64,000 nt of DNA, taken from the IMG/VR virus record IMGVR_UViG_3300042359_000853, positions 1-64,000 of that record. One strand, written 5' to 3'. How positions within the stretch are numbered: position 1 is the stretch's first letter; each line of letters opens with the position of its first letter. The notes beneath the pieces were generated by a model. The model saw only the letters and a program-made list of their open reading frames with translations. It was not told the DNA's origin and made no database searches. The translations under genes were made by a program, and so were the position numbers. This document shows positions 225 to 50,011 of the stretch, in pieces.

Positions 225-322
225 AAATTTCTTAAAAAGATATAAAGGGATAAAATCTTTCCTAGGTAAAACAGGTGTTGATATAAAAATAATAACATTT
301 ATTTCCATATATACTCTATATG
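225..322 (+). repeat. Direct repeat copy A (upstream/promoter region of ORF 320)
   Basis: aaatttcttaaaaa-gat..aagggataaaatc..ggtgt..atatata..tatatg aligns with 1781..1880; aagggataaaatc is exact at 245..257 and 1802..1814. Confidence 0.75.
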
Positions 323-1699
323 AAATACTTGAAAACATACGAGAGTTTTAGAATCCTTAATGAGGAAATATTTGGTCTTTTCGGGTCTAATAATGGTCAG
401 AAGAGATATAAAAAATTAGAAGATAAAGATCTAATTAGTTTTATCCAAGACAACTCTAAGGAATTGGAGGGTAAATTTTCGGTCCCTTGGAAGACAAACT
501 TAATACAAAATATTTCTAATAAAGACGAAATTATAAAAATATTAAATGATATAAAAAATGAGAGTAGCTTAGATGGATTTATAAGTGACCTAGAGCTTAG
601 TAAAAACATCAAATTAAAATCAGTAGAAAAAGATCCATCACAGGAAAAAAAAGATGAACCTCAACCCTCTAAAGAAAAAGAAAATACTAATTTACAAGAT
701 ACAGAATTAAGAACTTTTTTAGAAAAATGGAAGGTAGAGTGGGAAAATATAATAGGGGAAGGAATTAATGAAAAATATATTAATGGGTTATATAATTTCT
801 TAAAATGGGAACCAGAGTTTCAAAATGGTTTACTTAAAGGTGAAAGTATGGGGCCGGATGAAACAGATAGATCAATAAATTTCTTAAAATTAATACAAAA
901 ATATAACCCACAATCATTAAAAGAAAAATTAGATATAATTAATAAAAAAAGGGAAGAACTTTTTAAAGAAATAAAAAAATATTTACCTAATTTTAATATC
1001 GATGATCCCAAAACTCACGAAAAATTTTTTAAAGCCAGCAATGATAAACCCTATATGAGATTAGAAGATTTTTTAGAAAATCTTAACCTTTTTACTAAAA
1101 ATGAATATTCCTCCCCAATAAATAAAAAATTAGAATTCATTTCAGAAAAATTAGAAAAATTTTCATTTGGCACGGATGTTAAAAAATTAGGGATTGATAT
1201 TTTAAGAGATAAAAAACTTATAGTTGATAGAAATGGTTTTGTTACCTATCACGGATCTGATAGGGATAACTATGGCGATGATAAATTTGCTTCTACAATT
1301 AACTTTAAAAAAAGAAAAGGATTAGGGTTATTTACATCAGATTTAAAAACAGCAATACAATATGCTATAGCTCAAACTAAAGGGGGGATGGCAGGATCTA
1401 AAGCTGAAGAAGGTGATAAAGTTACGATTTATCGTATTGTATTAAATAGTAAACCATTTCTATTGGGTAATGAAAATGAAGTCTCTTTCAGTGAGATGAA
1501 GGTATTATTAGATTTTGGTTTTGGTGGTTTAGATGGTATAGGTCAAACCGATAATGAAAGAGAAATTATTATAGTAACTCCTGATGCTATCGAAGGGGCC
1601 GAACTGATAAGTCAAGGTGATGACGAATTTGGTAAGATTCTCAAGATGGCCGAACAAAAAGGGGGAGGACATCGGGTTTCTGGGAAAAAAATGGACTAG
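320..1699 (+). CDS. Putative head-packaged protein with C-terminal ADP-ribosyltransferase-like domain
   Basis: N-terminus MKYLKTYESF..LNEE. C-terminal motifs VTYHGS, GLGLFTSDLKTAIQYA and NEREIIIVTP fit the H-Y-E pattern of ART folds. Confidence 0.5.
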   Translation: MKYLKTYESFRILNEEIFGLFGSNNGQKRYKKLEDKDLISFIQDNSKELEGKFSVPWKTNLIQNISNKDEIIKILNDIKNESSLDGFISDLELSKNIKLKSVEKDPSQEKKDEPQPSKEKENTNLQDTELRTFLEKWKVEWENIIGEGINEKYINGLYNFLKWEPEFQNGLLKGESMGPDETDRSINFLKLIQKYNPQSLKEKLDIINKKREELFKEIKKYLPNFNIDDPKTHEKFFKASNDKPYMRLEDFLENLNLFTKNEYSSPINKKLEFISEKLEKFSFGTDVKKLGIDILRDKKLIVDRNGFVTYHGSDRDNYGDDKFASTINFKKRKGLGLFTSDLKTAIQYAIAQTKGGMAGSKAEEGDKVTIYRIVLNSKPFLLGNENEVSFSEMKVLLDFGFGGLDGIGQTDNEREIIIVTPDAIEGAELISQGDDEFGKILKMAEQKGGGHRVSGKKMD

Positions 1700-1780
1700 T
1701 AGCGTAGGTAAAAAAATTTCCAAAAAGTTCTTACATGGAAGTCTTGGCCGGAAAATTTTCTAAAAAAAGGGGGTCAAAAA

Positions 1781-1880
1781 AAATTTCTTAAAAAAGATGC
1801 GAAGGGATAAAATCCTTTTTTGGGTAGGAAGTGGTGTAATGAAAAAATGATTTAATCTTTTTCAATATATATACTATATG
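1781..1880 (+). repeat. Direct repeat copy B (upstream/promoter region of ORF 1878)
   Basis: Same motif order and spacing to the ATG as 225..322. Confidence 0.75.
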
Positions 1881-2348
1881 AAAAAGATTAAATCATTTGT
1901 AGAGCACATCAAGGAAGATTTAGATGTATCTACTAGGCAAAGAGCTTTTCAAGAGCTCGAGAATAGAGTAAAAAGCTTAAAAAATTTCGAGCTCGATCGT
2001 AAGCTCCGGCAGCTTAGTAATATCTACCGTAGTCTTTCTGGCAGCTCAAATGCTCTTAAAGACGAGTTACAAAATTATATACGGGAAGTTTTAGGAGTTC
2101 CTAGAGCTGAAATACTCTCACGTAATCTTAGTATTAGAGGCGTAGGTAATCATACTGTTGAGTTTATTGTAAGGGATGGTGAAAGATCTATTCTATTACA
2201 CCTGATTGTAAAGCCTAACGGATATCGCGTAGGTGGTACATCTAGTAAAGATTTCTTAGATAGATGTGAGAATGATATACAATTTTGGGAGTTAGTAGAT
2301 AATCTAGCCCAGGGTATTCAGGAGAATGATATTTATTTGGAAAAATAA
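1878..2348 (+). CDS. Hypothetical protein with N-terminal MKKIKSFVEHIKE peptide
   Basis: 156 aa ORF; ATATATA box just upstream of the ATG. Confidence 0.75.
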   Translation: MKKIKSFVEHIKEDLDVSTRQRAFQELENRVKSLKNFELDRKLRQLSNIYRSLSGSSNALKDELQNYIREVLGVPRAEILSRNLSIRGVGNHTVEFIVRDGERSILLHLIVKPNGYRVGGTSSKDFLDRCENDIQFWELVDNLAQGIQENDIYLEK

Positions 2349-2431
2349 TTTCAAAAAAACCATATAAAACACTTAAAGACATTTAGGCAACTGGACAAAG
2401 AGACCTCTATTGAAGTAAATATTATCAGGTT

Positions 2432-2936: not shown

Positions 2937-2950
2937 ATCTAAATTTTTTA

Positions 2951-2958
2951 CAAATATA
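2951..2958 (-). promoter_or_regulatory. Bacteroidota-type -7 promoter element TATATTTG
   Basis: Matches TAnnTTTG consensus, upstream of ORF 2936(-). Confidence 0.65.
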
Positions 2959-2963
2959 GTTAT

Positions 2964-4957: not shown

Positions 4958-4970
4958 AGATATTTTTTTA

Positions 4971-5029
4971 CAAAGATAATAAGATTTTCCGGTTTTAGAT
5001 AGTCTTTAGGTAATTTTTTTGTATATTTG
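4971..5029. promoter_or_regulatory. Divergent TAnnTTTG promoter pair
   Basis: TATCTTTG on - at 4971..4978 (13 nt before ATG 4957) and TATATTTG on + at 5022..5029 (11 nt before ATG 5041). Confidence 0.7.
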
Positions 5030-5739: not shown

Positions 5740-7314
5740 ATGAAACAAAAATTATTACTACTTCTCTTTCTACTAGTAAGTAGTCTGTCGGAAGCTCAAA
5801 ATCTAGTAGATACCGTAAGAACGAATATCACTACCAACACAACCTGGAGACGGGATAGAATTTATCTTATCGAAGGCTATCGGTTTGTAAAAGATGGAGC
5901 TACTCTAACAATCGAGCCAGGCACTACTATTAGAGGTGATAAAGCTTCGAAAGGCACACTTATTATTACAAAGACCGGAAAGATCCTAGCCAACGGAAAT
6001 GATACAATGCCTATTGTATTTACCTCGAATCAACCACAAGGAACTAGAACTTATGGTGACTGGGGAGGTATCGTAATCCTGGGAAACGCACCTATCAATG
6101 TTCCTGGTGGCATAGGTATTATCGAAGGTGGTCTTCTTGGGCAAGATGCTACTTATGGGGGAAATAACCAAGATGATAGTTCAGGAGTTTTTAGGTATGT
6201 TCGTATTGAATACCCAGGCATCGCCTATCAGCCAAACTCTGAAATAAACGGATTAACTCTCGGTGGTGTAGGTCGTAAAACACAAATCGATCACATACAA
6301 GTTAGCTATTCTGGTGATGATGCCTTTGAGTGGTTCGGTGGAAATGTAAATTGTAAATACCTAGTAGCACACAGAGGTTGGGATGACGATTTTGATACTG
6401 ATTTTGGATATTCTGGAAAGGTTCAATTCGCCTTATCAATGAGAGACCCAAATATTTCAGACCAATCCCAATCCAATGGACTTGAGTCTGATAACGATGG
6501 AACCGGAACTTTTAATACACCCTTTACTTCACCTCTATTTTCTAATGTAACTATTATTGGACCTAGAGAGGGTGGTAACCCGGCTTCACTCTACCGTAGA
6601 GCTATGCATCTTCGTAGAAATACCAGAACTTCTATCTATAACTCTCTTTTTACTGGTTATACAACTGGTCTTCATATTGATGGACAAGCATCTCAAGCAG
6701 CAGCTACTCTCGATAGCCTTCAGCTAGAACGTGTTATACTCTGTAATATGCTAAATAACTTCGAGCAAACATCTGGTCAAAATACCTGGCAAGGTATGAA
6801 CTCCTATTTTTTAGATTCAACTCGTCAGAACCAAATTATTGATAGCACATTTCGATTGGGTCTTCGCCCGGGTTACGCAAACTTGGGTAGTCCAGACCTC
6901 GTGCCAGATTCAGGAAGTTTATTGTTGAGTGGTGCTAATTTTACAAATCCCCGATTGAGTGATGGATTTTTTGATACCGTGAGTTTCATTGGCGCTTTTG
7001 GCCTAGTAGATTGGACTAGGGGCTGGTCAAATTTCAATCCAGATACCGTTCATACCTCTGTAGAAGTCGTAAATCGAACCGTAACAAGGGTTTATCCGAA
7101 CCCAGTTACACAAGGTCTATTTACTATTCAGTTAGATGAACTTCCACAAGATGTGCGTGTATTCGATATTCGTGGTAGGGAGGTTCAATCTTCATGGAGT
7201 CAGATCTCTGAAGATGCCATCCGAGTATCTCTGGATACAAATAAAGTTGGTCTAATGACCGTTCTTATTCAAGATAAACTTTCCTTAAAGATATCCAGAA
7301 TAGTAGTTCGGTAA
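5740..7314 (+). CDS. Secreted beta-helix-like protein with T9SS type A C-terminal sorting domain
   Basis: Signal peptide MKQKLLLLLFLLVSSLSEA. Core DDSSGVFRYVRIEYPG..EINGLTLGGVG..DDAFEWFGG resembles a Bacteroidota surface-protein family. C-term VYPNP..VRVFDIRGREV..KISRIVVR. Confidence 0.75.
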   Translation: MKQKLLLLLFLLVSSLSEAQNLVDTVRTNITTNTTWRRDRIYLIEGYRFVKDGATLTIEPGTTIRGDKASKGTLIITKTGKILANGNDTMPIVFTSNQPQGTRTYGDWGGIVILGNAPINVPGGIGIIEGGLLGQDATYGGNNQDDSSGVFRYVRIEYPGIAYQPNSEINGLTLGGVGRKTQIDHIQVSYSGDDAFEWFGGNVNCKYLVAHRGWDDDFDTDFGYSGKVQFALSMRDPNISDQSQSNGLESDNDGTGTFNTPFTSPLFSNVTIIGPREGGNPASLYRRAMHLRRNTRTSIYNSLFTGYTTGLHIDGQASQAAATLDSLQLERVILCNMLNNFEQTSGQNTWQGMNSYFLDSTRQNQIIDSTFRLGLRPGYANLGSPDLVPDSGSLLLSGANFTNPRLSDGFFDTVSFIGAFGLVDWTRGWSNFNPDTVHTSVEVVNRTVTRVYPNPVTQGLFTIQLDELPQDVRVFDIRGREVQSSWSQISEDAIRVSLDTNKVGLMTVLIQDKLSLKISRIVVR

Positions 7315-8237: not shown

Positions 8238-8302
8238 GAATATATAGTAGAAAAAATATAAGTTGATATCAAAGATATAAAAATTTTGATATATAAATAT
8301 GT

Positions 8303-11540: not shown

Positions 11541-11615
11541 ACAGATTTTTATTTCAACTACAAAGATAGAAAAAAAAATCAGTAGTTGCACATCTTTATG
11601 AAAAAAAATCTTTTA

Positions 11616-12050: not shown

Positions 12051-13928
12051 ATGAAAAAAGACGTAATCATCGGTATTGACCTAGGAACAACTAACTCAGC
12101 GGTAGCTATTGTTGAGGCGGGAGATTCAGTGATCATTCCAAACTCTGAAGGCCGCAGAACAACACCATCGGTCGTTGCCTTCACCGATAAAGACCGAAGA
12201 ATCGGAGATCCTGCTAAAAGACAAGCAGTGACCAATCCCCAAAAAACCATCTACTCTATTAAGAGATTTATTGGTAAGAGCTGGGCAGCATCGAAAGACG
12301 AAGCTGGCAAAGTTCCCTACACGGTGAAATCAAGCTCAAACTCTACACCCGTCGTATCGATTGATGATAGAGATTATACCCCTCAAGAAATCTCAGCGAT
12401 GATCCTTCAGAAAATGAAAAAAACCGCCGAAGATTATCTAGGTTACGAAGTTACACGAGCTGTTATTACCGTTCCTGCTTACTTCGGAGATGCCGAAAGA
12501 GGCGCAACGATGGAAGCCGGTCAAATCGCTGGGCTTAAAGTCGAGAGGATTATCAACGAACCTACAGCAGCTGCCCTGGCCTATGGTTTAGATAAAAAAG
12601 GTCAAGACTCAAAAATCTTGGTTTTCGACTGCGGAGGTGGAACCCACGACGTATCAGTTCTTGAAATTGGTGATGGTGTATTCGAGGTAAAATCAACCGA
12701 TGGTGATACCCATCTAGGTGGTGATGACTTTGATAATGCGATCATTGCCTGGATGACCGGTGAGTTCAAAAGTGACACTGGTATCGATCTAACGAAAGAT
12801 CCAATGGCATTACAACGACTGAAAGACGCAGCTGAAAAAGCAAAGATCGAACTTTCTTCTTCACTTTCAACCGAGGTCAATCTTCCCTATATTACGGTGA
12901 AGGATAACGTTCCTCAACACTTTGTGAAATCTCTTACCCGTGCTAAGTTCGATCAACTTACCAAATCACTCGTTGATAGAGCAGTGGCCTGTGCGAAAAG
13001 TGCTCTAAAATCTGCTGGTCTTAAGCCAAGTGAGATTGATGAAGTAGTTTTAGTAGGTGGTTCTACTCGCATTCCAGCTATTCAAGATGCTGTCGAGAGT
13101 TTTATTGGTAAAAAAGCCAATAAATCTGTAAATCCAGATGAAGTCGTAGCAATGGGAGCAGCTATTCAAGGTGCTGTTCTTACCGGTGATGTTAATGATG
13201 TTCTTCTACTAGACGTTATTCCACTCTCGTTCGGTATTGAAACCATGGGTGGTGTAATGACCAAACTTATCGAGGCCAACACAACTATTCCAGTAAGAAA
13301 GCAGCAAACTTTCTCAACAGCTGCTGATAATCAAAACTCAGTTGAAATCCACGTTCTTCAAGGTGAAAGGCCGATGGCATCAGATAACCGTTCGATAGGC
13401 AGGTTCCATCTTGATGGTATTATGCCAGCTCCGAGGGGTGTTCCACAAATCGAGGTTAGTATTGATATCGACGCTAATGGTATCCTAAGTGTTAAAGCTC
13501 AAGATAAAGCTACTGGTAAAGAAAACAAAATTCGTATCGAAGGTGGTTCTTCTCTAACACCAGAGGAAATCCAACGTATGAAAGACGAGGCTATTCAGAA
13601 CGAGGCTGAGGATAAACGTAAGATGGAAACTGCCGAGCTTGTCAATAAGTGTGATACTCAAGTATTCACTACTAAAAAATCACTCGAAGAGTGGAAGGAC
13701 AAGTTTACACCCGAGCAGCTAGAAGAGCTTCAAAAACTGGTCGGCCAGCTCGAAGAGGCTCTCTCTCAACGAGACGAGACTAGGATGAAAGAAGCTTCGT
13801 CTTCTCTTGAGTCGACTTTCTCCAAAATTTCTACCGAGATTTATTCTAAAATCAGTAGTGAAGAAGGTTCTAGTTCAAGTGGTGTAGAAGATGTAGAATA
13901 TACAACGGTTGAAGATCAAGACAAGTAA
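12051..13928 (+). CDS. dnaK: Chaperone DnaK (Hsp70)
   Basis: [61 protein letters not shown]. Confidence 0.98.
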
Positions 13929-13948
13929 AACCATTAGTTCGTCTATCA

Positions 13949-13985
13949 AATAGTAGTAGGTCCTAAGATCTACTACTATTTTTTT
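13949..13985 (+). terminator. Intrinsic terminator after dnaK
   Basis: aatagtagtaggtc-ctaa-gatctactactatt plus T run. Confidence 0.85.
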
Positions 13986-14014
13986 ACTAAACTAGAAAAA
14001 TAATATATAATACC

Positions 14015-16218: not shown

Positions 16219-16321
16219 ATTTGTATATATAAAATCTATACTATGGAACTTCACTCAAAACTTCATCTTATTAAGTTCCTAAGAAAAGTGAAAAGTTTCT
16301 TAAAAACTAAATAGAGTTCAA

Positions 16322-17611: not shown

Positions 17612-17690
17612 ATTTGTATATATATTATTTGAGGAATGTTTTTTTATATATAAACTTTATCAAAAAAAAAATAATCAAAAGAGAAAGAGA

Positions 17691-18969: not shown

Positions 18970-19000
18970 ATAAAATTTTATTTAAGGGTATATATTATTT

Positions 19001-19935: not shown

Positions 19936-19943
19936 CAAAGATA
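19936..19943 (-). promoter_or_regulatory. TATCTTTG promoter element
   Basis: TAnnTTTG 14 nt upstream of uvsE. Confidence 0.65.
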
Positions 19944-27175: not shown

Positions 27176-27189
27176 TTTTATATATAAAA
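27176..27189. promoter_or_regulatory. Palindromic bidirectional promoter TTTTATATATAAAA
   Basis: Occupies most of the 20-nt gap between divergent ATGs at 27173 and 27194. Confidence 0.65.
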
Positions 27190-28041: not shown

Positions 28042-28351
28042 GTCTTACCATATTTTTAGCGTATATATGAAAAATACCATATCCTATTGAGTCCTCATAA
28101 AACTTGATCTCACCGGTTTCTTTATCGATAAGAAGAAGATTATCATACTGATCTATTGCTAGATTTACTCTATCTTTTAGTATTATCGAGTGTTTTGGCT
28201 TGGTTTTTTGGTTGTAAAGAAGATCGAAGTTCATACCGGCTAGAAATCCAGCACCTAGTGAGAAAACGACTAATACATAGTAAAAAAACTTATTTAAGAA
28301 AGTTTTTACTTTTTGAATGTTTATAAAATCAAGATTAAATTTTTTGTTCAT
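28034..28351 (-). CDS. Single-TM membrane protein upstream of SLT
   Basis: FFYYVLVVFSLGAGFLAGM helix. Confidence 0.6.
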   Translation of the reverse strand: MNKKFNLDFINIQKVKTFLNKFFYYVLVVFSLGAGFLAGMNFDLLYNQKTKPKHSIILKDRVNLAIDQYDNLLLIDKETGEIKFYEDSIGYGIFHIYAKNMVRHE

Positions 28352-29274
28352 AATTTATTTTGTTTAAGAAATTCGAGTGCTATTTGAGATTCGTTTTGAT
28401 TTTTGAATCCATGATAGAATAATACTTCACTTGAGTTTCGACAATACGTATATCCATCTTCTTCAAGGTAGGTATCTAAAATATTCGGATCCATTTCAAC
28501 TTTTTTAAGTATTTCACTTTTATGAGTATTTACAAAAATTGTTTCATAATTTTTTTCAACACTTCTTCTCCAAAGAATGATATTTATTGCTGTTTCCTCG
28601 TGAAAAGGTAGATATTCTTTACCTCTTCTTCGTATCCAGGGATTTTCTATGAGTGATTTCCATTCTAAAATAAAATCTTCACACTTTTCACCAAAACTAA
28701 TTACACAGGTTCCAACATATCTCATCGATCTTTTTTTAACACCGAAAAGACACATAAGTGCTGCTTCGTTGTAGATAATTGTCCCAGGTGTTCCGGTAAC
28801 CCTACCATCAATATCGACTTCAACAGCTAGTCTTTCTTGACCATCAGATCCAATGTATTTCAATGTAGGATTCCATATTTTAGCTTTGGAGTAATGTGGT
28901 CCAAAAATTATTGGAAAAGAATGGGATATTGTCGTGAGGAGAGGATAGTCCTCATCATTTTCAAAATAGTCGATATTAAATCTTTTACCGACAAGAATAT
29001 CACAATCCATGAACAAAAAATCACCACCAAAATGATTTAATGCGTGAAATAAAATAGCTGGTTTATAAAAATAAAAATCAGTGCCGTATTCTTTTACTGG
29101 TTCAAAATATTGACATATAAGATTTGGATAGTCAAGTTGTGATTCAAATCCAATTGTATAATATATTATAGGTATAGTATAATTGGTTCTTATTATTATA
29201 GACTCAACGAGATTTTTAGCTTGAAATTCATAATTTTTATCGGAAAGAATAATAATTTTTCTTGAATTTTTCAT
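28348..29274 (-). CDS. GT-A-fold glycosyltransferase-like protein
   Basis: YFYKPAIL..FLFMDCDI (DxD)..HEETAIN..LFYHG. Confidence 0.6.
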   Translation of the reverse strand: MKNSRKIIILSDKNYEFQAKNLVESIIIRTNYTIPIIYYTIGFESQLDYPNLICQYFEPVKEYGTDFYFYKPAILFHALNHFGGDFLFMDCDILVGKRFNIDYFENDEDYPLLTTISHSFPIIFGPHYSKAKIWNPTLKYIGSDGQERLAVEVDIDGRVTGTPGTIIYNEAALMCLFGVKKRSMRYVGTCVISFGEKCEDFILEWKSLIENPWIRRRGKEYLPFHEETAINIILWRRSVEKNYETIFVNTHKSEILKKVEMDPNILDTYLEEDGYTYCRNSSEVLFYHGFKNQNESQIALEFLKQNKL

Positions 29275-31589: not shown

Positions 31590-31597
31590 AAAGGAAA

Positions 31598-34500
31598 TTA
31601 TTTATTCGGAATCTGAACAGTATCTCGTAAATCTTTGGATTTTCCGCTAAAAACTACTCTGTTTTGATATACAACTTCCCACGACAATAGAGAACCATCT
31701 ACTATATTCCAGGACCAAGAGGATTCATAATTTGCTAATTCTTGTTCTAAAATTTCTTCTCGACCATCATCATATACTAATATAAATTTTATTCCAATAT
31801 TATTGTTCGTAAGATTTCTAGAGAAGAACATAAAGTTATCTGAATTTTCAACTCTGTAAACACCCGTGAAGAAATCCTTGAAATTATTAGAAAAATTAGA
31901 GATAGAGGCCTCTGTATTCCAAATAGTATCTGTTAAAATACTATCCATAATTCTACCATTATGTATTTTCAATTCTTTCGGGTTTGTTTTTTCAAGAAGT
32001 CTTCTAAATAACACTTCTACAGTTACAAAATCTCTACTATGCCACTTTTTTTGTATAAAATCTAAGTAATCACTCTCTTTACTAAATTTTGGTATTGTAT
32101 CTAAAAAATAATCAATATTCCAGAACTGAAGATGAAAAGATATGTTATTTTCTTCAGTTTCTGTGGATTCATCGTAGTCGTTAAAAAATAACACCGCTTT
32201 TTGGTCATTACTCTCCATTTCAAGTGCGATATCATAGATTTTATCTAGTGAACGATTACCATATAGATCGTCACATTCAATTCTCACCACATTTGTGTAT
32301 CCGAGTGATTTTGCTAAGCTCATTGCGTTATGAAAATTTACCATTACAGATAAACCGTGTTTTTGAACACCTTTTGTAAAATTTTTCAGAGTGAAAATCC
32401 ATTTACTTTCAAGAGAGACATAATCATTTATAATTATTTCTTTAACATTTGAATATTCTTCACGAAATAATTGATTTCTACGATCATAGTAAAAAAAATC
32501 AACCATTTGTTGTATTTCTCTATCAATTGTTGTATTAGATACTAACATCAAATCAAATCCTCTAATTTTGAACCTTTCGATCTGCTGAATTAGTCTTTCT
32601 TTCACTCTTCTACTTGATACATAACTATCTAAAATTACTAGAGTTTTTTCTAGACCTTTTATTTGGATATCAGTTTTTGTTAATTCTTTATCCCCATGAA
32701 TATTTTTTGATATGAAAACCACACCTTTTTCCTGTGAAGTGCCGTTTATCAGAGTTTTACAATCTTCTTCAAAAATTTGATACTGGTATCCAAGCTTAAT
32801 GATTCTCAAAATTATTTGATTTCTAAGTATATCTTCAAAGTTATCGTGGAACTCTAATATAATATTCTCTATCTTGAGTAAATTCTGATCAGAAAGACCC
32901 TCGAAGGCTTTATATTCACTACCTTCGATGTCCATTTTCATGAGAGAGACTTTCTCAATACCAGAATCAGCAAAAAAGCTATCTAAGTCTATTGATGAAA
33001 TTTCGAAATGTTTATCGGTGATATTGATGGCAGAGCTAATAATTGAATTGTTTTGATCTTCATAGATTTTTATCTTTTCTTTTTTATCCCAAACAGCGTT
33101 TTTTACAAGACTAACTCGTGAATCCTCACCGTGTAAATTATTAAATACCTTGACTGCTTTATCAGAAACCTCAAAAGCTATTACTTTTTTTGCTCCTTTA
33201 TCTTTTGCTAATTCCGTGAATAGTCCAATAGAACTACCAACATCTAAAATCAGATCAAGTGAGTTTATACTAGAAAGAAATTGATCATAAATTCTATCTG
33301 TAAAAAATTGTTCGAAATTTACAAAAATAGGTTCATAAGTATCGATTCTAAACTTTTTTTTCTGAACATTAATCATCTTTATCTGATATGATTGAGAATA
33401 TAGTAAATTTCCACCATGATCGTAGAAATCAATAAGAAATCCTGAGAAATTTGGATTTTCTGAAAAATCATAATAGGATTTTGGTAGTGGTATTGCCCAA
33501 TAATTATTTTTATTTTCGAATTTTGCATCAAATGAAAAAATAGGAATTTGAGTATCCATATCTCTAATACAAACCATCATATCGAAAGGAAGGTCATGTA
33601 AATAATTTAGAGTCAATTTATTATCTGAACTATCAAAGTCAATATCAAATAATTTTTGGTTGAAAAATTCTGGTTTGATTAGTGTGTAGTTGTTTAATAA
33701 GTCTAGCATAGAGTATAATATTTTTGAATTTTCTTCTAAATCTTGGACCATCCATTTCAATTTCGAAGATTCTGTGTAGGTGTTCATATAGACGGGTATA
33801 TTTCTGAGAAAAAGTGGTATTTCCCAAGCGATGGCTTCTTTTATAGCAAGTGGGTTCGTTTCAGTATCACCATATCTACCTTCTGATGGGAAAATTACGG
33901 CATCCATACAAGAGTAAAAAGTATGAACATCGCTTCTTTCCCTCCAAATTTGACAATTTGGTGGTTTATTATCAATCAAATCTTGCCAATGACCCCTATA
34001 ATTATCAGGAAGAGCTCCAACAAAATGAAACTGAACATCAGGCATTATTTTTGCTAGGGAGAAGGTAAATCGTTGATTTTTTCTATTAGAGAAAAGTCCT
34101 ACTTGAAGAACATGCCTTTTTGTAGGATCGAGTCCTAATGTTTTCATACCTAATTCCCTATTTCTCTCACCGGTCGTAATTTCATGCTCGATAATTTCGA
34201 TGGGAATCCCAAGAGGTAGGAAATTTTTGACTTGCCACAGACTCACAACAAGCATCTTATCTGGTAGATACTTTTTCTCACGATGATCGATCGACGAGTC
34301 ATGAAGTGTTTCAAATATTTTCCAAGTTCTTGATGGTGAATATATTTTATCTAGTAATGGATGTGGCAGAAAATGGTCTGAAGTTTCTTCGAAATGAACC
34401 ACATCAGGTGAAATTTTCTGTAATAAGGTAAAAAGTTTTTTATAATTTTGATCGAGTGAAACCAATCTCGAACCAATCATCCCCTCTATTTTTTCTCGAA

Positions 34501-34636
34501 TCGTCGTATATTGTTTTTCATATACTAATTCGAAAACCCATACTTCGTTGTCTGTGTGTAATAGTTCTACTTTTTTTCTTAAATACTCTGGCATTCCACC
34601 AGTAGAAAGATGTGGTGTAATATAAACTATTTTCAT
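31598..34636 (-). CDS. Multidomain GT4 glycosyltransferase + FkbM methyltransferase + C-terminal domain
   Basis: HLSTGGMPEY, ETNPLAIKEA (GT4); LDVGSSIG..AFEV..LMKMDIEGSE (FkbM); start at MKIVY. Confidence 0.8.
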   Translation of the reverse strand: MKIVYITPHLSTGGMPEYLRKKVELLHTDNEVWVFELVYEKQYTTIREKIEGMIGSRLVSLDQNYKKLFTLLQKISPDVVHFEETSDHFLPHPLLDKIYSPSRTWKIFETLHDSSIDHREKKYLPDKMLVVSLWQVKNFLPLGIPIEIIEHEITTGERNRELGMKTLGLDPTKRHVLQVGLFSNRKNQRFTFSLAKIMPDVQFHFVGALPDNYRGHWQDLIDNKPPNCQIWRERSDVHTFYSCMDAVIFPSEGRYGDTETNPLAIKEAIAWEIPLFLRNIPVYMNTYTESSKLKWMVQDLEENSKILYSMLDLLNNYTLIKPEFFNQKLFDIDFDSSDNKLTLNYLHDLPFDMMVCIRDMDTQIPIFSFDAKFENKNNYWAIPLPKSYYDFSENPNFSGFLIDFYDHGGNLLYSQSYQIKMINVQKKKFRIDTYEPIFVNFEQFFTDRIYDQFLSSINSLDLILDVGSSIGLFTELAKDKGAKKVIAFEVSDKAVKVFNNLHGEDSRVSLVKNAVWDKKEKIKIYEDQNNSIISSAINITDKHFEISSIDLDSFFADSGIEKVSLMKMDIEGSEYKAFEGLSDQNLLKIENIILEFHDNFEDILRNQIILRIIKLGYQYQIFEEDCKTLINGTSQEKGVVFISKNIHGDKELTKTDIQIKGLEKTLVILDSYVSSRRVKERLIQQIERFKIRGFDLMLVSNTTIDREIQQMVDFFYYDRRNQLFREEYSNVKEIIINDYVSLESKWIFTLKNFTKGVQKHGLSVMVNFHNAMSLAKSLGYTNVVRIECDDLYGNRSLDKIYDIALEMESNDQKAVLFFNDYDESTETEENNISFHLQFWNIDYFLDTIPKFSKESDYLDFIQKKWHSRDFVTVEVLFRRLLEKTNPKELKIHNGRIMDSILTDTIWNTEASISNFSNNFKDFFTGVYRVENSDNFMFFSRNLTNNNIGIKFILVYDDGREEILEQELANYESSWSWNIVDGSLLSWEVVYQNRVVFSGKSKDLRDTVQIPNK

Positions 34637-34703
34637 GTTATTTTTATATCCCATATCCTGTAATAGTTTTTGTAAACAAATAACAAATTAAATATATACT
34701 ATA

Positions 34704-35515: not shown

Positions 35516-35553
35516 AATCGGTATATATAGTTTTTTTTTCTAAAAAATATGAA

Positions 35554-39318: not shown

Positions 39319-39789
39319 TCAATAAATTGACCACTTATCAATGCTTATAGTCGGATTTTTTATTCTATTCCGTTTGATTGTAGGTTTATTTTCTAACTCA
39401 CCAAACTTTAAGATTCTATCATCTTCATCTGTTTTTATAATCTCATCATCAAAATTTTGGATACTCTCTAGCATTTGACGGGAAAGTTCAATCCAATTCT
39501 CAATAATAAAATCTTGGATCTCTTCTTGCCAAGATTCTGTGTAAAAATTACATTCAAGTATATTTTTGGTCTTGCTCGTATCTGGATCTATTGTAAATAC
39601 ACTGACTACATACTCATAAGATCCTGGTCTTCTTCTTACATTCGAAATAGACGGTAATCTTTCACCTGGTTCGAAATTTTCATCCCACTCTATTTGATAA
39701 AATTCAAAAAAATCTTTTTGTAGGTTATCTGTGAATGTAAGTGATGAGGTATTATTCTCATCATTTTCATAAATTGCATATTTTTTCAT
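39319..39789 (-). CDS. Hypothetical acidic protein
   Basis: 156 aa ORF. Confidence 0.7.
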   Translation of the reverse strand: MKKYAIYENDENNTSSLTFTDNLQKDFFEFYQIEWDENFEPGERLPSISNVRRRPGSYEYVVSVFTIDPDTSKTKNILECNFYTESWQEEIQDFIIENWIELSRQMLESIQNFDDEIIKTDEDDRILKFGELENKPTIKRNRIKNPTISIDKWSIY

Positions 39790-40526
39790 ACTATACTAAG
39801 TAATATTTTTTCAACAAAATCTTTCATATCTTGAGTAGATATTTTATCTAAACTATCTTCCATCTGGTGACAATTGAATAACATCTTGAAATCAAGATAT
39901 TTACCGTCCTTTGTTTGTATTTGAGACGTTCCAGTTTCAAGAACCGGAAGAGGATTTATTACACAAGAATCAATACCATTTCTTCTAAATATAACACTAT
40001 CATTAAAAGGTGTTCTAACAACTGGTGGATCGAAAGTCTCTATTATTTTTGAGCTAAGACCACCTGGATATTCACCAATAAAGAAGTTGGTTCCACCACG
40101 ACCGGTAAGCTCGAGATTGAGTATCCAATCACATGGTCCTAAATCGCCATCTTGTATTTTCTGAGAAAGTCTTTGAGCTCCGAGTCCGCCGATTTCTTCT
40201 GCGTCGGTAAAACAAATGTTCAGATCGGGTCTATGAAGTTTTAGTGCTATAAGATTTATAACTGAACAAGAGTTATCGTTAGCATTGTGACTATTCGGAT
40301 TAACGATATCGTGATGAGCCACACACCAATGAGAACTCGAACCAGGTAGAATGATATTGAAGAGTGGAATATTTCTGTCCTTAAACTTGTCAACTTTATA
40401 GGTTATACCTAAACTTTTGAGTAGATCCAATATAAAAGAAACTCTTGGAGATCCTTCATCGGTATTACTTAAACAATTCCCTAAGTTCTTAACTGAGCAG
40501 AATTGGTATATTTTTTGATAGATCAC
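39786..40526 (-). CDS. M28-family zinc peptidase
   Basis: AHHD, ANDNSCSV, DAEEIG, LNLELTG, C-terminal His. Confidence 0.8.
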   Translation of the reverse strand: MIYQKIYQFCSVKNLGNCLSNTDEGSPRVSFILDLLKSLGITYKVDKFKDRNIPLFNIILPGSSSHWCVAHHDIVNPNSHNANDNSCSVINLIALKLHRPDLNICFTDAEEIGGLGAQRLSQKIQDGDLGPCDWILNLELTGRGGTNFFIGEYPGGLSSKIIETFDPPVVRTPFNDSVIFRRNGIDSCVINPLPVLETGTSQIQTKDGKYLDFKMLFNCHQMEDSLDKISTQDMKDFVEKILLSIV

Positions 40527-40562
40527 TTTGTAAAATATTTTAACTTATATATTAAATAATTT

Positions 40563-41585
40563 ATGTCTAAAGATTACTATGGAATACTAGGTGTTGATAG
40601 AGGAGCATCGAGTGAAGAAATAAAAAAAGCATACCGTAAAAAAGCACTCGAGCACCATCCAGACAAAGGAGGAGATGAAAATAAGTTCAAAGAGGCCTCT
40701 GAAGCCTATGAAGTTCTCTCTGATAGTGATAAAAGAAGTAGATACGATAGGTTTGGAACCGCAGAACCAGGTCATGGTGGGGGTTTTAATCCAAATGATT
40801 TCTTCTCTGGTTTTGGTGATATATTTGGTGATATGTTCGGAAGAAGACCCGGCGCACAAAGAAGAGGTCAAGATATCCGTGTTCAAATTCAACTTAATAT
40901 TTTAGACATTTTGACAGGTGTAAGAAAAAAAATCCGATACAATCGAAACGCCAAGTGTGAACCGTGTCAAGGTCAAGGTGGTCAAAATTTTCAGGCTTGT
41001 TCTTTCTGTGGAGGAAGTGGTCAAAAAATAACTATCGCGAATACCCCGTTTGGGAGAGTTCAACAATCAGTTACTTGCCCGACATGCAGTGGGAGAGGCC
41101 AACAAATAAAAGATAAATGTCGAAGTTGCTCCGGATCAGGAGTAAAATCAGTCGAAGAGGTTGTAGAAGTTGATATTCCACCAGGAGCAGTGGGTGGTAT
41201 GCAAATGGCAGTTCCCGGTAAAGGACACGCAGTTCAAGCTGGAGTAGAAGGAGATCTTCATGTTTTAATCCAAGAGTTAGAGCATGAAACCTATAAAAGA
41301 GACGGACATAATATCAATATTGATTATTGGTTAGATATTCACCAAGCAGTTTTGGGTTCTCGAATTCAAGTGGAAACCCCACAAAAAAATATAGAACTTT
41401 ACATTCCATCAGGAACCGAATGGGGTAAAGTATTTACCTATCAATCTCTCGGGGTTCCCGTGATTGACGGTCACGGACATCAGAGAGGCCGAGGGGATCT
41501 TAAGATTATTATTAAAATAAAAATACCAAAAATTTTATCAGGGGAGCAGCGAGAAATATTTGAGAAATTGAAAGAAGTTTCTTAA
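40563..41585 (+). CDS. dnaJ: Chaperone DnaJ (class A)
   Basis: J-domain with HPD, G/F region, four CxxCxGxG motifs, C-terminal GDL domains. Confidence 0.97.
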
Positions 41586-42929: not shown

Positions 42930-43080
42930 GTTAGTTTTTTTTGGATATATATTAAAAATTTAACTACTTAAATATGAACTACACAGAAGTCCTTATTTTC
43001 TTTTTTCAATTTGACAAAAAAGAATCCAAAAAGTTGAAAAATGAAAAAAAAAATTTAATATATAAAAAAAAATATAAATA

Positions 43081-43746: not shown

Positions 43747-44859
43747 TTAAATATAGATAGTATAGAATGATTCTCCTGACATGTGGTTAAATGTAAAAAA
43801 AAGTGACAAACTATAAATGGTCTTCTCAGCCTCTTGTGCATCTAAATTTTTATGCAAAACATATAAATTGATAGAAAAATTAGAATGTTGAGATTTTATT
43901 TTAGTAATAAGATTTGGTAATTCTGTTAGGATATCCTGACTGATATTAATTACTATATCGTTATAAGTTAAATTTGTGTCGTAATCAAAAAATAAATTAT
44001 GAAACCAAAAAAGTTCTTTCAATAACATTCTTTTATATGGTGTCAATTCACTAGATATAAAAAGAATATTATTTCTACTCTTCGACAGATTGGATCCACA
44101 AAGATAAAAACACCTTGTTAAATCATAAATTGGAAAATAATTGGGAAGTAATGAACATTTATTTGGATTTTTTAGATCTGGAAATTTATTTTCGATTCTT
44201 AGTCTTTCTTCTTCATTTTTAACCAATTGTTCATTTGTTATTGTTTGTTTGGACCAACTATCTTGGCTTATGTAATAATCACCAAGTGTTAGTGGTAGAA
44301 GAAACCACTTACCCACGAACTCAATATGTCTAACTACATTAGTATCAATGTAGAAACTATCCATTGAACCATCATCGAATTCAGGTAATATATTTCTAAA
44401 AGCCCTGAAGTCAGGTCTTGTATCGAATGTTGGTGAACTAGAGCAATTACAATTTATATAAAGATATGGGTAAGGTGATAAAAATGTGTTTTCATTGTTT
44501 AATTCTCTTGTGTAACATGAAATCCCAGTCACTTGGGGGTATTTTCCAAAAAAATGCGCGTAAGTTTCCAATAATGATGGATATGCATAATCATCACTAT
44601 CAAAAGTCACACATATGTCACCACTACTACCTCTTTGTGGATTATAAAGACACTCTTTTTTCCTAGATTGTCTGAAGTATTTTACTCTAGGATCTTTTAT
44701 TGATAATTCTATCAATTTATCCTCTGCACTATCAAATTCTGAAAAATCATCAGTCACTATCCATTCCCAATTTTTGTAAGTTTGATCTAATATTTGCTCA
44801 TATATTTTTTCAACTCTATGACCACGGTTATAGAATTGTGTATTAATAGAAAACTTCAT
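43747..44859 (-). CDS. GT2-family glycosyltransferase
   Basis: FSINTQFYN..NWEWIVTDDFS..FDSDD. Confidence 0.8.
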   Translation of the reverse strand: MKFSINTQFYNRGHRVEKIYEQILDQTYKNWEWIVTDDFSEFDSAEDKLIELSIKDPRVKYFRQSRKKECLYNPQRGSSGDICVTFDSDDYAYPSLLETYAHFFGKYPQVTGISCYTRELNNENTFLSPYPYLYINCNCSSSPTFDTRPDFRAFRNILPEFDDGSMDSFYIDTNVVRHIEFVGKWFLLPLTLGDYYISQDSWSKQTITNEQLVKNEEERLRIENKFPDLKNPNKCSLLPNYFPIYDLTRCFYLCGSNLSKSRNNILFISSELTPYKRMLLKELFWFHNLFFDYDTNLTYNDIVINISQDILTELPNLITKIKSQHSNFSINLYVLHKNLDAQEAEKTIYSLSLFFTFNHMSGESFYTIYI

Positions 44860-46622
44860 AATATTATTTTATGTTTTTTTTTAAAGTAAGTTTTTACAAA
44901 CTTCATTTGTCCAAGATCCCATATTCTAAGAGCTCCAAACTCCCCGAAAACTATCTGATGTTCAGATAAATCTCTATTGTATCCCATTTTTACTAATTTT
45001 TGTTTGGTAAATTTTTGTTTATTTTGTCTTCTACCATCAAGTAGGTAACTAAAATTTGGACCGGTTATAGAATCCAAATTGAATCCCAGTCTGTAATATA
45101 GTGTTCCTAGTGACCATGATCTATCACTAAAAGATACCAAAAGTTTAGGACTATATTCTCTCTCGAAATGGGTAAGTAGTTTAGATGCTGCTCCTGGTAT
45201 GGTTGTATCTAAAATATTACAAAACCTAGAAAGATTCCATTCATCATCTTTCATCCTTTTTCTGCCAGAAAAATGATCAAAAGTCATTAAGCTAACTAGT
45301 TGATCCCCGTAATAAAGACCAAGTCTTAAACTAGAAGATGTGTATCCTTGAATGTGATTTTTATCTAAAAAATCTCTGTATTCACTTACAGAATCTACTT
45401 TTTTTACCCTACATTTTCTAGCACTTATGCGAGTAGTAGAAACTCGAATCCAGTTTTTGATTTGACTTTTGATGATATCTTTTTTTAGTGACCAATCATC
45501 TTCCCAAATCTGGATTATTCTGATTCTCTTTTTAGAAAAAAACTCAAGTTTATCTAAATGATAAGATTTATTTTTGTAAATCTCTGAGTGCCAGTAAAGA
45601 CCGTTATATTCGAATCCAATAGATAGTGAAGGAAGATACATATCAATTTCAAGACCATCACGGTAGTTTAAGATAACTTCGCCACTATAAATAGATTTTA
45701 TGTAGTTGAAAATTTCTATTTGACTAGTAGATGAAATATTATTTAAGGGGTTACAAATAAGACATTTTGGTGAATTTATTCTCGTTCTAGCGCCATACAG
45801 ATGTGTATGTATTTGGTAGTTGTGATCTTTACCAAGATCACATTTTAAGAAGTATGTTCTATTTCCTAGATATTCAATAAAATTTGGATCCTGACCAATA
45901 GTTGAATTTATTTCTCCCTTTCGCCATTTTTCTAAAATACCATCTTTGTATTTTTGTGATTGAGTGTAGTTTTCAACACCCCAATTTCTTTTAGTAGTTT
46001 CTATGGCTTTTCTATTCAACACTTCGGATTTTCTTGGACTATCTACTCCGAATTTCTGGATAAGTGTCTCTTTAATCTTTTTCTTTACCTCTTCAGATCT
46101 AAATGGATTATCAACACCTAAGTTTTTTTGTAAAGTTTCTACTTTTTTTTTCTTGACCTCGTCTATTTGTGATACGTTTTCAACTCCGTATTTATCTAGA
46201 AGAGTTTCTCTAATTTTCTTAGAGATTTGATCTTTATCTAAAGATCTTAAAGAATCCATCAATTTTAGACGAACATCTGGATGCAACGAAGGATTTTTAT
46301 ATCCCCATTTTTCTAAACTATTTCGTCTAAAAATTTCTAACTTTTGGTCTATTAAATCTTTGTTTCCATTCGAGCAAAGTTTCGAGCAGAAATCCCGGTA
46401 TCCTCTTTTTAGAGATAAGAATTCAGTTCTACTATCACAGGTTTTACAAAAACCTCTTGGTCTTTTCAACAAATAAATCTTTTCTGAAAGTGTATCACCT
46501 TCAACTTTTTCGAGATATTCATATAAAGATGGATAATTTTTCTTGACCCAAGAAGATTTTACACTACCAAGTAATAGTTTGTTTTCTATAGTCTCTAGAT
46601 CTTTTTCGATATTATTTTCCAT
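44856..46622 (-). CDS. Free-standing homing-endonuclease-like protein with Zn fingers, repeats, nuclease and GNAT-like C-terminus
   Basis: CKTC..FCSKLC; five (Y/W/L/F)GVxN-type repeats; EIDMYLP..FEYNGLYWH..IWEDDW; FLDKNHIQG..LSRFC..GAASKLL. Confidence 0.7.
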   Translation of the reverse strand: MENNIEKDLETIENKLLLGSVKSSWVKKNYPSLYEYLEKVEGDTLSEKIYLLKRPRGFCKTCDSRTEFLSLKRGYRDFCSKLCSNGNKDLIDQKLEIFRRNSLEKWGYKNPSLHPDVRLKLMDSLRSLDKDQISKKIRETLLDKYGVENVSQIDEVKKKKVETLQKNLGVDNPFRSEEVKKKIKETLIQKFGVDSPRKSEVLNRKAIETTKRNWGVENYTQSQKYKDGILEKWRKGEINSTIGQDPNFIEYLGNRTYFLKCDLGKDHNYQIHTHLYGARTRINSPKCLICNPLNNISSTSQIEIFNYIKSIYSGEVILNYRDGLEIDMYLPSLSIGFEYNGLYWHSEIYKNKSYHLDKLEFFSKKRIRIIQIWEDDWSLKKDIIKSQIKNWIRVSTTRISARKCRVKKVDSVSEYRDFLDKNHIQGYTSSSLRLGLYYGDQLVSLMTFDHFSGRKRMKDDEWNLSRFCNILDTTIPGAASKLLTHFEREYSPKLLVSFSDRSWSLGTLYYRLGFNLDSITGPNFSYLLDGRRQNKQKFTKQKLVKMGYNRDLSEHQIVFGEFGALRIWDLGQMKFVKTYFKKKHKIIL

Positions 46623-46742
46623 AATCTATATATAATCTTTATTATCACAACCTACAAAAAAGTTCAGAAAAAAAACTCTCAAAACTTCGCTTTGTGAACC
46701 AACCATTCCGAGAAAAATCATATATAGATAAAAATAAAATTT

Positions 46743-47708: not shown

Positions 47709-47712
47709 AAAG

Positions 47713-47742
47713 AAAAAACCGAGATTTATTCTCGGTTTTTTT
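47713..47742 (+). terminator. Intrinsic terminator after nrdB
   Basis: aaaaaaccgaga-tttat-tctcggtttttt. Confidence 0.85.
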
Positions 47743-47831
47743 GTATAAATATTTGTGGTCGTGTTGAGGTTTTATCAAATTTTTTGTCTATATTTGTACA
47801 AACAAGTTACCAACAACATCATAAAAAAACT

Positions 47832-48620: not shown

Positions 48621-48623
48621 ATT

Positions 48624-49256
48624 TCAAGAAACTTTTCTACGATTGGATTCGTAAATAGGATTGAAACTTTGTCCTCTGAAAAAAGCAGTTGAATAACGAC
48701 TGACTAAACAATTCGGGAAAAATTCAATAAGTTTATCAATATCAGGTATCGAACATTGAACCCTTCTCTGGTCTTTCGAATCAACTTTAGGATTGATTAT
48801 AATACCCATATCTTTTGTTTTTTGTAGATTTTTTTTCATGGATTTGTAGAGATCCGAAGTTGATTTTGAACATCTACCTTTAGGGATAGATTTAATCAAC
48901 TCTACGTATTGGATTAGTTCTTCTCTGGTGAGACTTCCGAAAAAATAATCTCTTAGTTGAGGGGTGAAATTGATTTCAATAACTTCTTCTACTCTTTTGT
49001 ATCCAGAGAATTGTTTGTATCTTACTATAACGAGTGTTTGTTTTTTATTAGTATCCAAATCCCAGATACGAAGAATATCACCCATACCGACGGATTTACC
49101 ACCAGTCGTTTTAACTGAGATATCTTCTTGAACAAGGGAAATATCATGCTTTGAGGTGTCATTACCAGAGGGTCCTAATCCAAAAATAGAACGAATCTGA
49201 TCCTCCCAGAAGTAACCGTGACCCTGACTTTGAGTATATACCGAGTTTGAAACCAT
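48624..49256 (-). CDS. Putative PD-(D/E)xK nuclease (restriction-endonuclease-like)
   Basis: HGYFWEDQI..KHDI..ISVKTTG; converges on the MTase with a 3-nt gap. Confidence 0.5.
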   Translation of the reverse strand: MVSNSVYTQSQGHGYFWEDQIRSIFGLGPSGNDTSKHDISLVQEDISVKTTGGKSVGMGDILRIWDLDTNKKQTLVIVRYKQFSGYKRVEEVIEINFTPQLRDYFFGSLTREELIQYVELIKSIPKGRCSKSTSDLYKSMKKNLQKTKDMGIIINPKVDSKDQRRVQCSIPDIDKLIEFFPNCLVSRYSTAFFRGQSFNPIYESNRRKVS

Positions 49257-49388
49257 ACAGTAAAGATAAGGAAAAAAATTCAATTTTCAACCATTCATTC
49301 CAAATTAATTATCCACTTTTTGTGGGTGTAATTACCAACTCATGGTTAGAAGGCTACAAATAATCTTTTCAATATAATATATAGAATT

Positions 49389-50000
49389 ATGAGATATATA
49401 CGAAATTATAAATTATTTGAGAATAGTAGTTCACTAACACAAGATCAAATAGATTTTTTAACAAGAAGCGCCAGTGGTCCTTGGTCAGTAGATCCAGAAA
49501 CAGGATTTATTGATGTTACGGGAGGTTTTAATTGTGATGATCAGAATCTTGACAATTTTTTGGGACTTAAATTCGGTAAGATTGGTGGACATTTCACTTG
49601 TAAAGGGAATAATCTTAGAACACTCGAGGGTTCTCCAGAAATAGTGTATTTGAGTTTTTGGTGTGAAGAAAATCCTTTAGTGTCTTTCGAAGGTGCCCCC
49701 AAAAGAATAGACGGTAATTTCATATTTGGAAATTATCACGATGTATATAACTTAAGTGGATTTTTAAGGTGGATCAAAAGAGAAAAACCAGGAGATGCCG
49801 AACTAATTCTAACCCATCACTTTTTCACACCAGAGGTTATTAAAAAACAAATAGACAAAGATTCCAACTTCTGCTATTATGTAAGTAAAGCCTGGAATAC
49901 ACCACCCTTTAAGAAAAAACAAGAAAAACTAGGGGAGATTTTACCCGAGAATATACTTCTCAAGATAGACGATCTATGGTCTATCGGTGGATATTTATAA
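49389..50000 (+). CDS. LRR-like repeat protein with N-terminal MRYIRNYKLFE peptide
   Basis: GGHFTCKGNNLRTLEGSPEIVYLSFWCEENPLVSFEGAP repeats. Confidence 0.7.
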   Translation: MRYIRNYKLFENSSSLTQDQIDFLTRSASGPWSVDPETGFIDVTGGFNCDDQNLDNFLGLKFGKIGGHFTCKGNNLRTLEGSPEIVYLSFWCEENPLVSFEGAPKRIDGNFIFGNYHDVYNLSGFLRWIKREKPGDAELILTHHFFTPEVIKKQIDKDSNFCYYVSKAWNTPPFKKKQEKLGEILPENILLKIDDLWSIGGYL

Positions 50001-50011
50001 TATATAAGATA

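Follow-up and report, generated by a model that had tools for sequence, protein, structure and literature searches.

We analysed a stretch of 64,000 nucleotides (nt), hereafter the window, which comprises bases 1-64000 of one 227,583-bp contig (33% G+C) deposited as the linear IMG/VR virus record IMGVR_UViG_3300042359_000853, and focused on a short box, ATATATA, that stands at preferred distances in front of many start codons. The source is a freshwater giant phage with a capsid, portal and sheath of the T4 type, and its host probably belongs to the Bacteroidota. An earlier note on this sequence had proposed that boxes lying 4-7 nt from start codons are -10 elements comparable to that of T4 late promoters and that a class of late mRNAs is translated essentially without leaders.

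ATATATA boxes in the window

Rereading of the sequence recovered all 12 ATATATA sites cited in that note at the gaps it had given, the gap being the number of nt between the end of the box and the start codon. On the plus strand, boxes with short gaps occupy positions 307..313 (gap 6 to the ATG at 320, which opens an open reading frame (ORF) of 459 amino acids (aa)), 1867..1873 (gap 4 to ATG 1878, 156 aa), 8289..8295 (gap 7 to ATG 8303, 335 aa with a Laminin_G_3 domain), 14003..14009 (gap 5 to ATG 14015, 87 aa) and 49377..49383 (gap 5 to ATG 49389, 203 aa). On the minus strand they occupy 16224..16230 (gap 5 to the ATG at 16218, 460 aa), 17617..17623 (gap 5 to the ATG at 17611, 429 aa) and 46627..46633 (gap 4 to the ATG at 46622), the last in front of a gene for a 588-aa HNH/DUF7487 homing endonuclease. 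These genes, with a gap of 4-7 nt, are referred to as class 1 (near-leaderless). The box at 14003..14009 lies directly 3' of a terminator-like hairpin (13948-13981) that trails the Hsp70 gene. The 18-mer reported to be identical upstream of 16218 and 17611 is real; tandem gene duplication was rejected as its source, because the two encoded proteins are unrelated and the common 18-mer is therefore no relic of such an event.

One further plus-strand box, at 50000..50006, lies 5 nt from an ATG at 50012. The longest frame at this place (49976-50269, plus strand) opens at 49976, the start taken by the ORF caller, and overlaps the preceding gene; the position of the box suggests that ATG 50012 is its true start.

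Two boxes are shared by divergent genes. The perfect palindrome TATATATA at 27179..27186 is separated by 5 nt from the minus-strand ATG 27173 (601 aa) and by 7 nt from the plus-strand ATG 27194 (97 aa), both genes being class 1, which confirms the earlier description of one palindrome between two divergent ATGs 20 nt apart. A second palindromic box, at 35522..35529, lies 6 nt from ATG 35515 on the minus strand (class 1) and 24 nt from ATG 35554 on the plus strand, a gene of the class with longer gaps (class 2). Further class 2 genes in the window are preceded by boxes at 18989..18995 (minus strand, gap 19 with an A-rich leader to the ATG at 18969), 28062..28068 (minus, gap 20 to the ATG at 28041), 42946..42952 (minus, gap 16 with an A-run to the ATG at 42929), 43058..43064 (plus, gap 16 with an A-run to ATG 43081) and 46720..46726 (plus, gap 16 to ATG 46743). 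The plus-strand box at 34692..34698 shows an intermediate spacing, with a gap of 11 to ATG 34710.

Two distances separate the box from the start codon

For the whole contig we used a set of 233 crude gene calls, which cover 93% of its length and take the first ATG of each frame. Across these calls, the distance from the end of the box to the first ATG was bimodal: 36 instances fell at 4-7 nt, with 5 as the mode, while ~40 fell at 16-25 nt. When the 60 nt upstream of genes were shuffled 300 times with dinucleotides preserved, ATATATA was expected at gap 4-7 in 0.61 genes (maximum 3) and at gap 16-25 in 1.2 genes, as against the 34 and 32 genes observed. The histogram of spacing against an AT-matched null that had been suggested as a check is sharply peaked and not flat. 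A test that does not depend on the gene calls gave 37 of 146 boxes (25%) with an ATG at 4-7 nt opening an ORF of at least 60 codons, whereas the 34 other 7-mers of four A and three T scored 2.2%, and in an unbiased 7-mer count ATATATA ranked first in both distance windows. Among all starts at gap 4-7 that open at least 60 codons, 37 were ATG, 3 GTG and 1 TTG, a predominance that lends weak support to a leaderless reading, ATG being the commonest start anyway.

The earlier note had overlooked the second class, which is of similar size: the same box stands 16-25 nt upstream of the start codon, and the leader that follows it is A-rich and about 11-20 nt long. In these genes A is found at 68-84% at the positions 5-8 nt past the box, that is, where class 1 genes have their ATG. 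The predicted near-leaderless share comes to about 16% of genes overall and to some 40% of the promoters that can be recognised.

The box has the position and polarity of a promoter

The box has the 8-bp consensus WATATATA, most often in the form TATATATA or AATATATA, and stands in front of about 75 genes. It is a mark of the heads of transcription units, being found before 38 of the 64 genes with a divergent upstream neighbour, before 33 of the 80 co-directional genes whose spacer measures 20 nt or more, and before just 3 of the 88 co-directional genes packed with a spacer of less than 20 nt. A ribosome signal would be expected at operon-internal genes as well, and the scarcity of the box there is therefore promoter-like.

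The element has a direction. At gap 4-7 there are 15 copies of AATATATA and 1 of its reverse complement TATATATT, and at gap 16-25 there are 20 and 2, respectively, which indicates that the last A is required and that the first position is free to be T or A. At position -1 of the box the ratio of T to A was 28 to 9 in divergent spacers and 14 to 18 in co-directional ones (Fisher p=0.013), indicating that the perfect palindrome TATATATA is preferred between divergent genes. Because TATATATA equals its own reverse complement, one box could fire both ways between such genes; 10 or 11 single boxes serve two divergent starts, each at the class 1 or the class 2 distance, and at two of the shared boxes the ATGs are just 19-20 nt apart (27173/27194 and 185915/185935).

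The box profile revealed no conserved -35 element upstream of WATATATA, where the region is merely T/A-rich, and E. coli-type sigma-70 -35/-10 sites were not enriched (62 found versus 65 expected). In a crude scan, terminator hairpins just upstream of boxes were not enriched either (1/37 and 4/38, versus 5.8% at random positions). Taken together, the evidence gives strong in silico support to the box as the phage's general promoter. It stands at two spacings from the start codon and frequently serves both directions, so that the earlier view of a -10 box near the ATG was incomplete.

Predicted transcription start and leaderless mRNAs

The T4 late promoter consists of an 8-bp box at -13 to -6, roughly one turn of the helix before the start site, has no -35 element and tolerates A or T at -13 (PMC2988020). 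The box TATATATA differs from the T4 late box TATAAATA by a single base. As 5 nt separate the box from +1 in the T4 geometry, the commonest gap, 5, would put the A of the ATG at +1, and with gaps of 4, 6 and 7 the start would fall within two bases of this A. One rule would then fit both classes, namely a start at an A about 6 nt past the box, and the simplest, if unproven, reading of the box-ATG geometry is that class 1 mRNAs are almost leaderless. GeneMarkS-2 applies the same logic, taking a -10-like box that lies a few nt from the start as the sign of a leaderless mRNA, as in Actinobacteria, Deinococcus and archaea (PMC6028130).

For two class 1 genes of well-known families, the box-proximal ATG was found to be the true N-terminus: in bS21 the Pfam positions 2-52 aligned from residue 4, and in the large subunit of topoisomerase II the PHROG alignment began at residue 2. 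Short capsid-gene contigs (1.7-1.8 kb), one of which starts inside the box and one probably just past it, were considered as proxies for transcripts and rejected, since they could be RNA or DNA; their ends are uninformative and were not used as evidence.

Genes in the two classes

The tail sheath, prohead protease, major capsid protein, portal and large terminase genes all belong to class 2. Class 1 includes two giant virion-protein-like ORFs, topoisomerase II, the HNH/DUF7487 homing endonuclease at 44856-46622 of the window, a TnsA-like nuclease, a resolvase, a glycosyltransferase, phage bS21 and many genes of unknown function. The term 'late' suits the regulon as a whole, and the leaderless subset lacks specificity for structural genes; with topoisomerase II, nucleases and bS21 among its members, this subset is described too narrowly by that term. 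Of the proposal of leaderless late mRNAs, the spacing and the gp55-like factor described below are borne out, the word 'late' is too restrictive for class 1, and the start site is a prediction from geometry. We infer, and only infer, that the common box may set timing and the leader may set translational yield.

The phage bS21 gene lies outside the window, on the plus strand of the contig at 102235-102426 (PF01165, E 5.6e-12), with its ATG 4 nt past the box. In Bacteroidetes lake phages, phage bS21 is co-expressed with late structural genes (Chen et al., PMC9723584), and the presence of bS21 and structural genes under the same box here agrees with that co-expression.

Three paralogous HNH/DUF7487 homing-endonuclease genes, all on the minus strand, were found at 44856-46622 of the window and at 186430-187947 and 191980-193686 of the contig. 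Two of them are wedged among the capsid, protease and sheath genes, each with its own ATATATA box, and relatives carry homing-endonuclease genes at the same places.

A second, host-type promoter class

The consensus of the -7 box read by sigma-A in Bacteroidota is TAnnTTTG (PMC9723704, PMC7366714), and in Flavobacterium the box spans -12 to -5 (PMC9723704). By pattern match, about 20 genes of the contig, all lacking an ATATATA box, have a TAnnTTTG box 4-25 nt away from the ATG. The host-type box is mostly TATCTTTG with an A-run behind it, at a distance of 12-16 nt from the ATG; in five genes it lies at 4-7 nt, and given the Flavobacterium position these five would also be near-leaderless. In the window, TATCTTTG followed by an A-run occupies 4971..4978 (minus strand, gap 13 to the ATG at 4957; presumed early class), and further host-type boxes lie at 2951-2958, 11561-11568 and 19936-19943.

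An operon of two genes on the plus strand of the contig (85742-86592) stands behind a host-type TACATTTG box with an A-run leader. Its last gene, at 85972-86592, encodes an extracytoplasmic function (ECF)-type sigma factor of 206 aa with regions 2 and 4. With a host-type box at its head, this operon points to a cascade in which host sigma precedes phage sigma.

A candidate factor that may read the box

The search for a gp55-like sigma factor that had been recommended yielded a candidate on the same contig, at 220946-221311 on the plus strand (L008:16946-17311). The gene starts with GTG and encodes a protein of 121 aa that, with moderate confidence, can be likened to the late sigma factor gp55 and contains sigma region 2 only. 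It matched phrog_234, 'late sigma transcription factor', with an E value of 2.4e-8 (5.9e-8 in a six-frame search), and had a weak match to Sigma70_r2, below the Pfam cut-off. The best fold match in PDB was gp55 in the T4 open promoter complex (7d7c_F, probability 0.95), followed by sigma region 2 domains. Across megaphage contigs of 570-770 kb the protein keeps 75-89% identity, above the capsid protein (70-79%), and distant homologues occur in Lak phages, Sphingomonas phage PAU, Xanthomonas phage XacN1, Tenacibaculum phage pT24 and Chryseobacterium phages; tblastn links it to an XacN1 gene annotated 'late transcription sigma factor'. In the 137 nt upstream of the gp55-like gene itself, ATATATA and TAnnTTTG boxes are both absent.

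No match to RNA polymerase (RNAP) beta or T7-type RNAP (PF00562, PF00940) was found in the contig, the RNAP beta domain had no match in the complete 642-kb relative LR756502, and the DxDGD catalytic motif is absent from all ORFs. A factor with region 2 only suits a promoter that has no -35 element better than an ECF sigma does, which favours the gp55-like protein as the likeliest candidate to read the box.

The box in related phages

The box is conserved in relatives. Capsid-gene loci on contigs of 594, 631 and 174 kb (L021-L023) keep it at both spacings, with orthologous genes among these loci sometimes switching class. The first 200 kb of LR756502 contain 56 boxes at gap 4-7 and about 35 at gap 16-29, LR756504 has 10 at gap 4-7 and 16 at gap 12-27, and LR756501 (a 735 kb genome) has 4 and 20 at these respective gaps. 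The box is thus a clade trait, and the leaderless fraction differs by lineage. Conservation of class between orthologues was also considered against LR756502, where 12 reciprocal pairs in 200 kb were too few to use, and a search for related loci with one class 1 protein returned no match.

The divergent pair encoding a TnsA-like nuclease and a 230-aa protein has one common box both here (contig 185223-186441) and in L023 (13254-14470). In L021 (13253-14494) the same pair has two boxes and shows a class switch, which indicates that leader type is evolutionarily labile.

Tenacibaculum phage pT24, which is cultured and carries a distant gp55-like gene, was rejected as a user of the box, the 50 kb examined containing no box at gap 4-7 and 2 at a longer gap. 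Three pT24 genes, including the gp55-like gene, have a motif near ATTGTTATATTA about 20-35 nt upstream (record positions 118139-118885, 137596-138702 and 148402-148761; L036), and this may be pT24's own promoter type.

We found no analysis of promoters, 5' untranslated regions (UTRs) or leaderless genes in papers on these huge phages (PMC7162821, PMC12619734, PMC9723584), and full-text literature searches gave no account of leaderless genes in megaphages or of TATATATA as a late promoter.

Source phage and other features of the contig

The major capsid protein belongs to Pfam Gp23 and shares 70-79% identity with proteins encoded on 590-770 kb contigs; the portal is of the T4 type, and the contig also has an identifiable tail sheath, prohead protease and large terminase. 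CheckV estimated the contig to be 39% complete, that is, a fragment. One search of sequencing runs found the sequence in 20 DNA metagenomes from lake water. The Mahaphage clade, which includes the Lak phages (PMC7162821), and the 'moraphages' (PMC12619734) are huge freshwater and gut phages of Bacteroidota, and what is published on them agrees with the virion genes, the Hsp70 and the sorting-domain protein found here.

At the DNA level, only the full-length Hsp70/DnaK gene (window 12051-13928, plus strand; PF00012, E 1e-242) could be matched to a public phage record (LR756502, 73.5% identity). A 524-aa protein encoded at 5740-7314 (plus strand) has a type IX secretion C-terminal sorting domain that scores slightly below the Pfam cut-off and hints at a Bacteroidota host. 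Two very large fusions of glycosyltransferase and FkbM methyltransferase (772 and 1018 aa) are encoded on the minus strand at 29271-34654, in an operon that has no ATATATA box. Non-coding gaps of 770-920 nt occur at 39789-40563 of the window and at 66800-67570, 112577-113450 and 150483-151405 of the contig. A tRNA search of the window found none, and the contig does not require an alternative genetic code.

Discussion

The TATATATA-type box is, in our judgement, probably a phage promoter that is read by a phage factor and gives rise to near-leaderless mRNAs and mRNAs with short A-rich leaders. WATATATA would be a -10-like element that works alone, unaccompanied by a -35 sequence; the host RNAP core together with a phage-encoded factor, likeliest the gp55-like protein (contig 220946-221311), would read it, and transcription would begin about 5-7 nt past the box. 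At about 37 genes the A of the ATG would lie at the start point, leaving a leader of 0-3 nt, and the ribosome would start on a 5'-terminal AUG. At about 38 genes an A-run would lie at the start point, giving an unstructured A-rich leader of about 11-20 nt, the kind preferred by the Shine-Dalgarno-less ribosomes of Bacteroidota, and this class includes the most abundant virion proteins. Expression would follow a cascade in which host-type TAnnTTTG boxes serve early genes, including the ECF sigma operon, and a phage sigma then serves the ATATATA regulon.

Several observations weigh against this model. As regards mRNA ends, the run search retrieved DNA metagenomes only and zero RNA runs, and class 1 genes do not differ from other genes in the structure of their 5' coding regions. 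The host phylum seldom uses leaderless mRNAs, whose share is 5.5% in F. psychrophilum (PMC9723704), while UTRs of less than 10 nt amount to 3.7% in B. thetaiotaomicron (PMC7366714); compared with these values of 3.7-5.5%, the predicted share of ~16% is high. As regards the factor, the match of the 121-aa protein to phrog_234 covers part of the profile only, its fold match to gp55 is non-significant (E 0.42) and starts from a poor model (predicted local distance difference test, pLDDT, 57), and a sequence-profile search of PDB with this protein did not retrieve gp55. No match to a gp45-type clamp (PF02916) was obtained in the contig or in LR756502, in a search to which control genomes barely respond and which could miss a divergent clamp; likewise, no small protein matched gp33 in the PHROG scans run, none of which was aimed at gp33. 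Furthermore, the ECF sigma on the same contig could also read the box, the fragment status of the contig (39% by CheckV) leaves room for a phage RNA polymerase elsewhere, and several giant ORFs (894 to 1578 aa) have no family match.

These last three points also favour an alternative that we consider rather unlikely, in which the leaderless or short-leader promoter is real and is read by another factor, either the ECF sigma (85972-86592), which has regions 2 and 4 and an operon headed by a host-type promoter, or an unrecognised phage RNA polymerase, which one of those ORFs or the missing part of the phage could encode. ECF sigmas, however, use region 4 to recognise a -35 element, and the boxes have no conserved one; a polymerase is disfavoured by the failure to find an RNAP beta domain even in the complete 642-kb relative and a DxDGD motif in any ORF, and the box is one position off the T4 box that gp55 reads.

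It is decidedly unlikely that the class 1 box is instead an unstructured AU-rich element for ribosome loading or enhancement, with transcripts starting further upstream. The near absence of the box before operon-internal genes (3/88) argues against this, as does the second fixed distance of the same box, which is incompatible with a ribosome site; strand specificity fits promoters, and the divergent spacers of 19-20 nt are too short to hold another promoter outside coding sequence. The idea draws its appeal from the rarity of leaderless mRNAs in these hosts and from the reliance of Bacteroidota translation initiation on A/U-rich unstructured leaders, as indicated in one study (PMC6847099).

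A perfectly palindromic core, with flanks that are roughly symmetric (T-rich upstream and A-rich downstream), could also suggest that TATATATA is the site of a dimeric regulator or a DNA-bending element near promoters and not a polymerase element. We regard this as very improbable, given that AATATATA is functional in one orientation only, that no other conserved element offers itself as the true promoter, and that the fixed 4-7 nt separating the box from the ATG, or from where the A-run begins, match a -10-to-+1 distance. Finally, chance in AT-rich intergenic DNA or an artefact of start calling, conceivable in a genome of 33% G+C with a caller that always picks a frame's first ATG, is refuted by the shuffles (0.6 versus 34 seen), the composition-matched 7-mers (2.2% versus 25%), the agreement of the test independent of gene calls and the same peak in independent genomes.

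The promoter reading may be extended, in a bolder form that we put forward as unlikely, to a private expression regime in which a palindromic and bidirectional T4-late-like promoter is combined with phage bS21, itself a class 1 product, to bias ribosomes towards messages with a 5' AUG or an A-rich leader, the mix of leaderless and leadered mRNAs setting stoichiometry. Phage bS21 would enter host ribosomes in a phylum where bS21 already governs how the anti-Shine-Dalgarno sequence is used. Related phages differ in their proportions of leaderless and leadered genes.

If the promoter reading is true, it would provide the first promoter map for the never-cultured giant Bacteroidota phages of the Mahaphage type, and about one gene in six would be translated leaderless in a phylum without Shine-Dalgarno recognition and with few leaderless mRNAs; the leaderless prediction bears on why such phages carry bS21. 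The box would also help to correct start-codon calls in these genomes, as with 50012 in place of 49976, and might serve as an 8-bp bidirectional promoter part for Bacteroidota genetics.

Comparison with known systems

The ATATATA promoter resembles the sigma-A promoters of Bacteroidota in having an AT-rich box near the start site and the same A-run leader, and differs from them in that it has no TTTG part and serves a separate set of genes. With the leaderless genes of Actinobacteria, Deinococcus and archaea it shares a box close to the ATG at a constant spacing and the dominance of ATG; unlike in those organisms, the genes here form a viral regulon with its own sigma, and the same box also drives leadered genes. 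Among phages, the Mahaphage/Lak phages, the 'moraphages' and the bS21-carrying lake phages are described as having DnaK/Hsp70, a sigma factor and bS21 and no RNA polymerase (PMC7162821, PMC12619734, PMC9723584), and the same holds here. The Gp23-type capsid likewise resembles those of huge Bacteroidota phages, at 70-79% identity to proteins on the 590-770 kb contigs.

There is a further likeness to T4, whose late promoters are read by gp55 together with the co-activator gp33 and the sliding clamp gp45 as activator, and which has the same single 8-bp AT-rich box with no -35 element, A or T at the first position and a place before virion genes, the comparison of box position resting here on the distance from box to start codon and not on the transcription start. 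In both cases the phage combines a T4-type capsid, portal and sheath with a region-2-only protein, gp55 or gp55-like. The two systems differ in the size of the factor, which is 121 aa here and about 185 aa in gp55, and in the host, here of the phylum Bacteroidota; the search for a gp45-type clamp, which could miss a divergent one, gave no match here. T4 late mRNAs carry Shine-Dalgarno leaders, whereas about half of the boxes here adjoin an ATG and are predicted to give no leader. The consensus is TATATATA instead of TATAAATA, which makes the box a palindrome that is used both ways. It is plausible that what is new here is a T4-late-type promoter that has turned palindromic and become fused to the start codon, working by a T4-like mechanism for which a candidate factor is encoded on the same contig.

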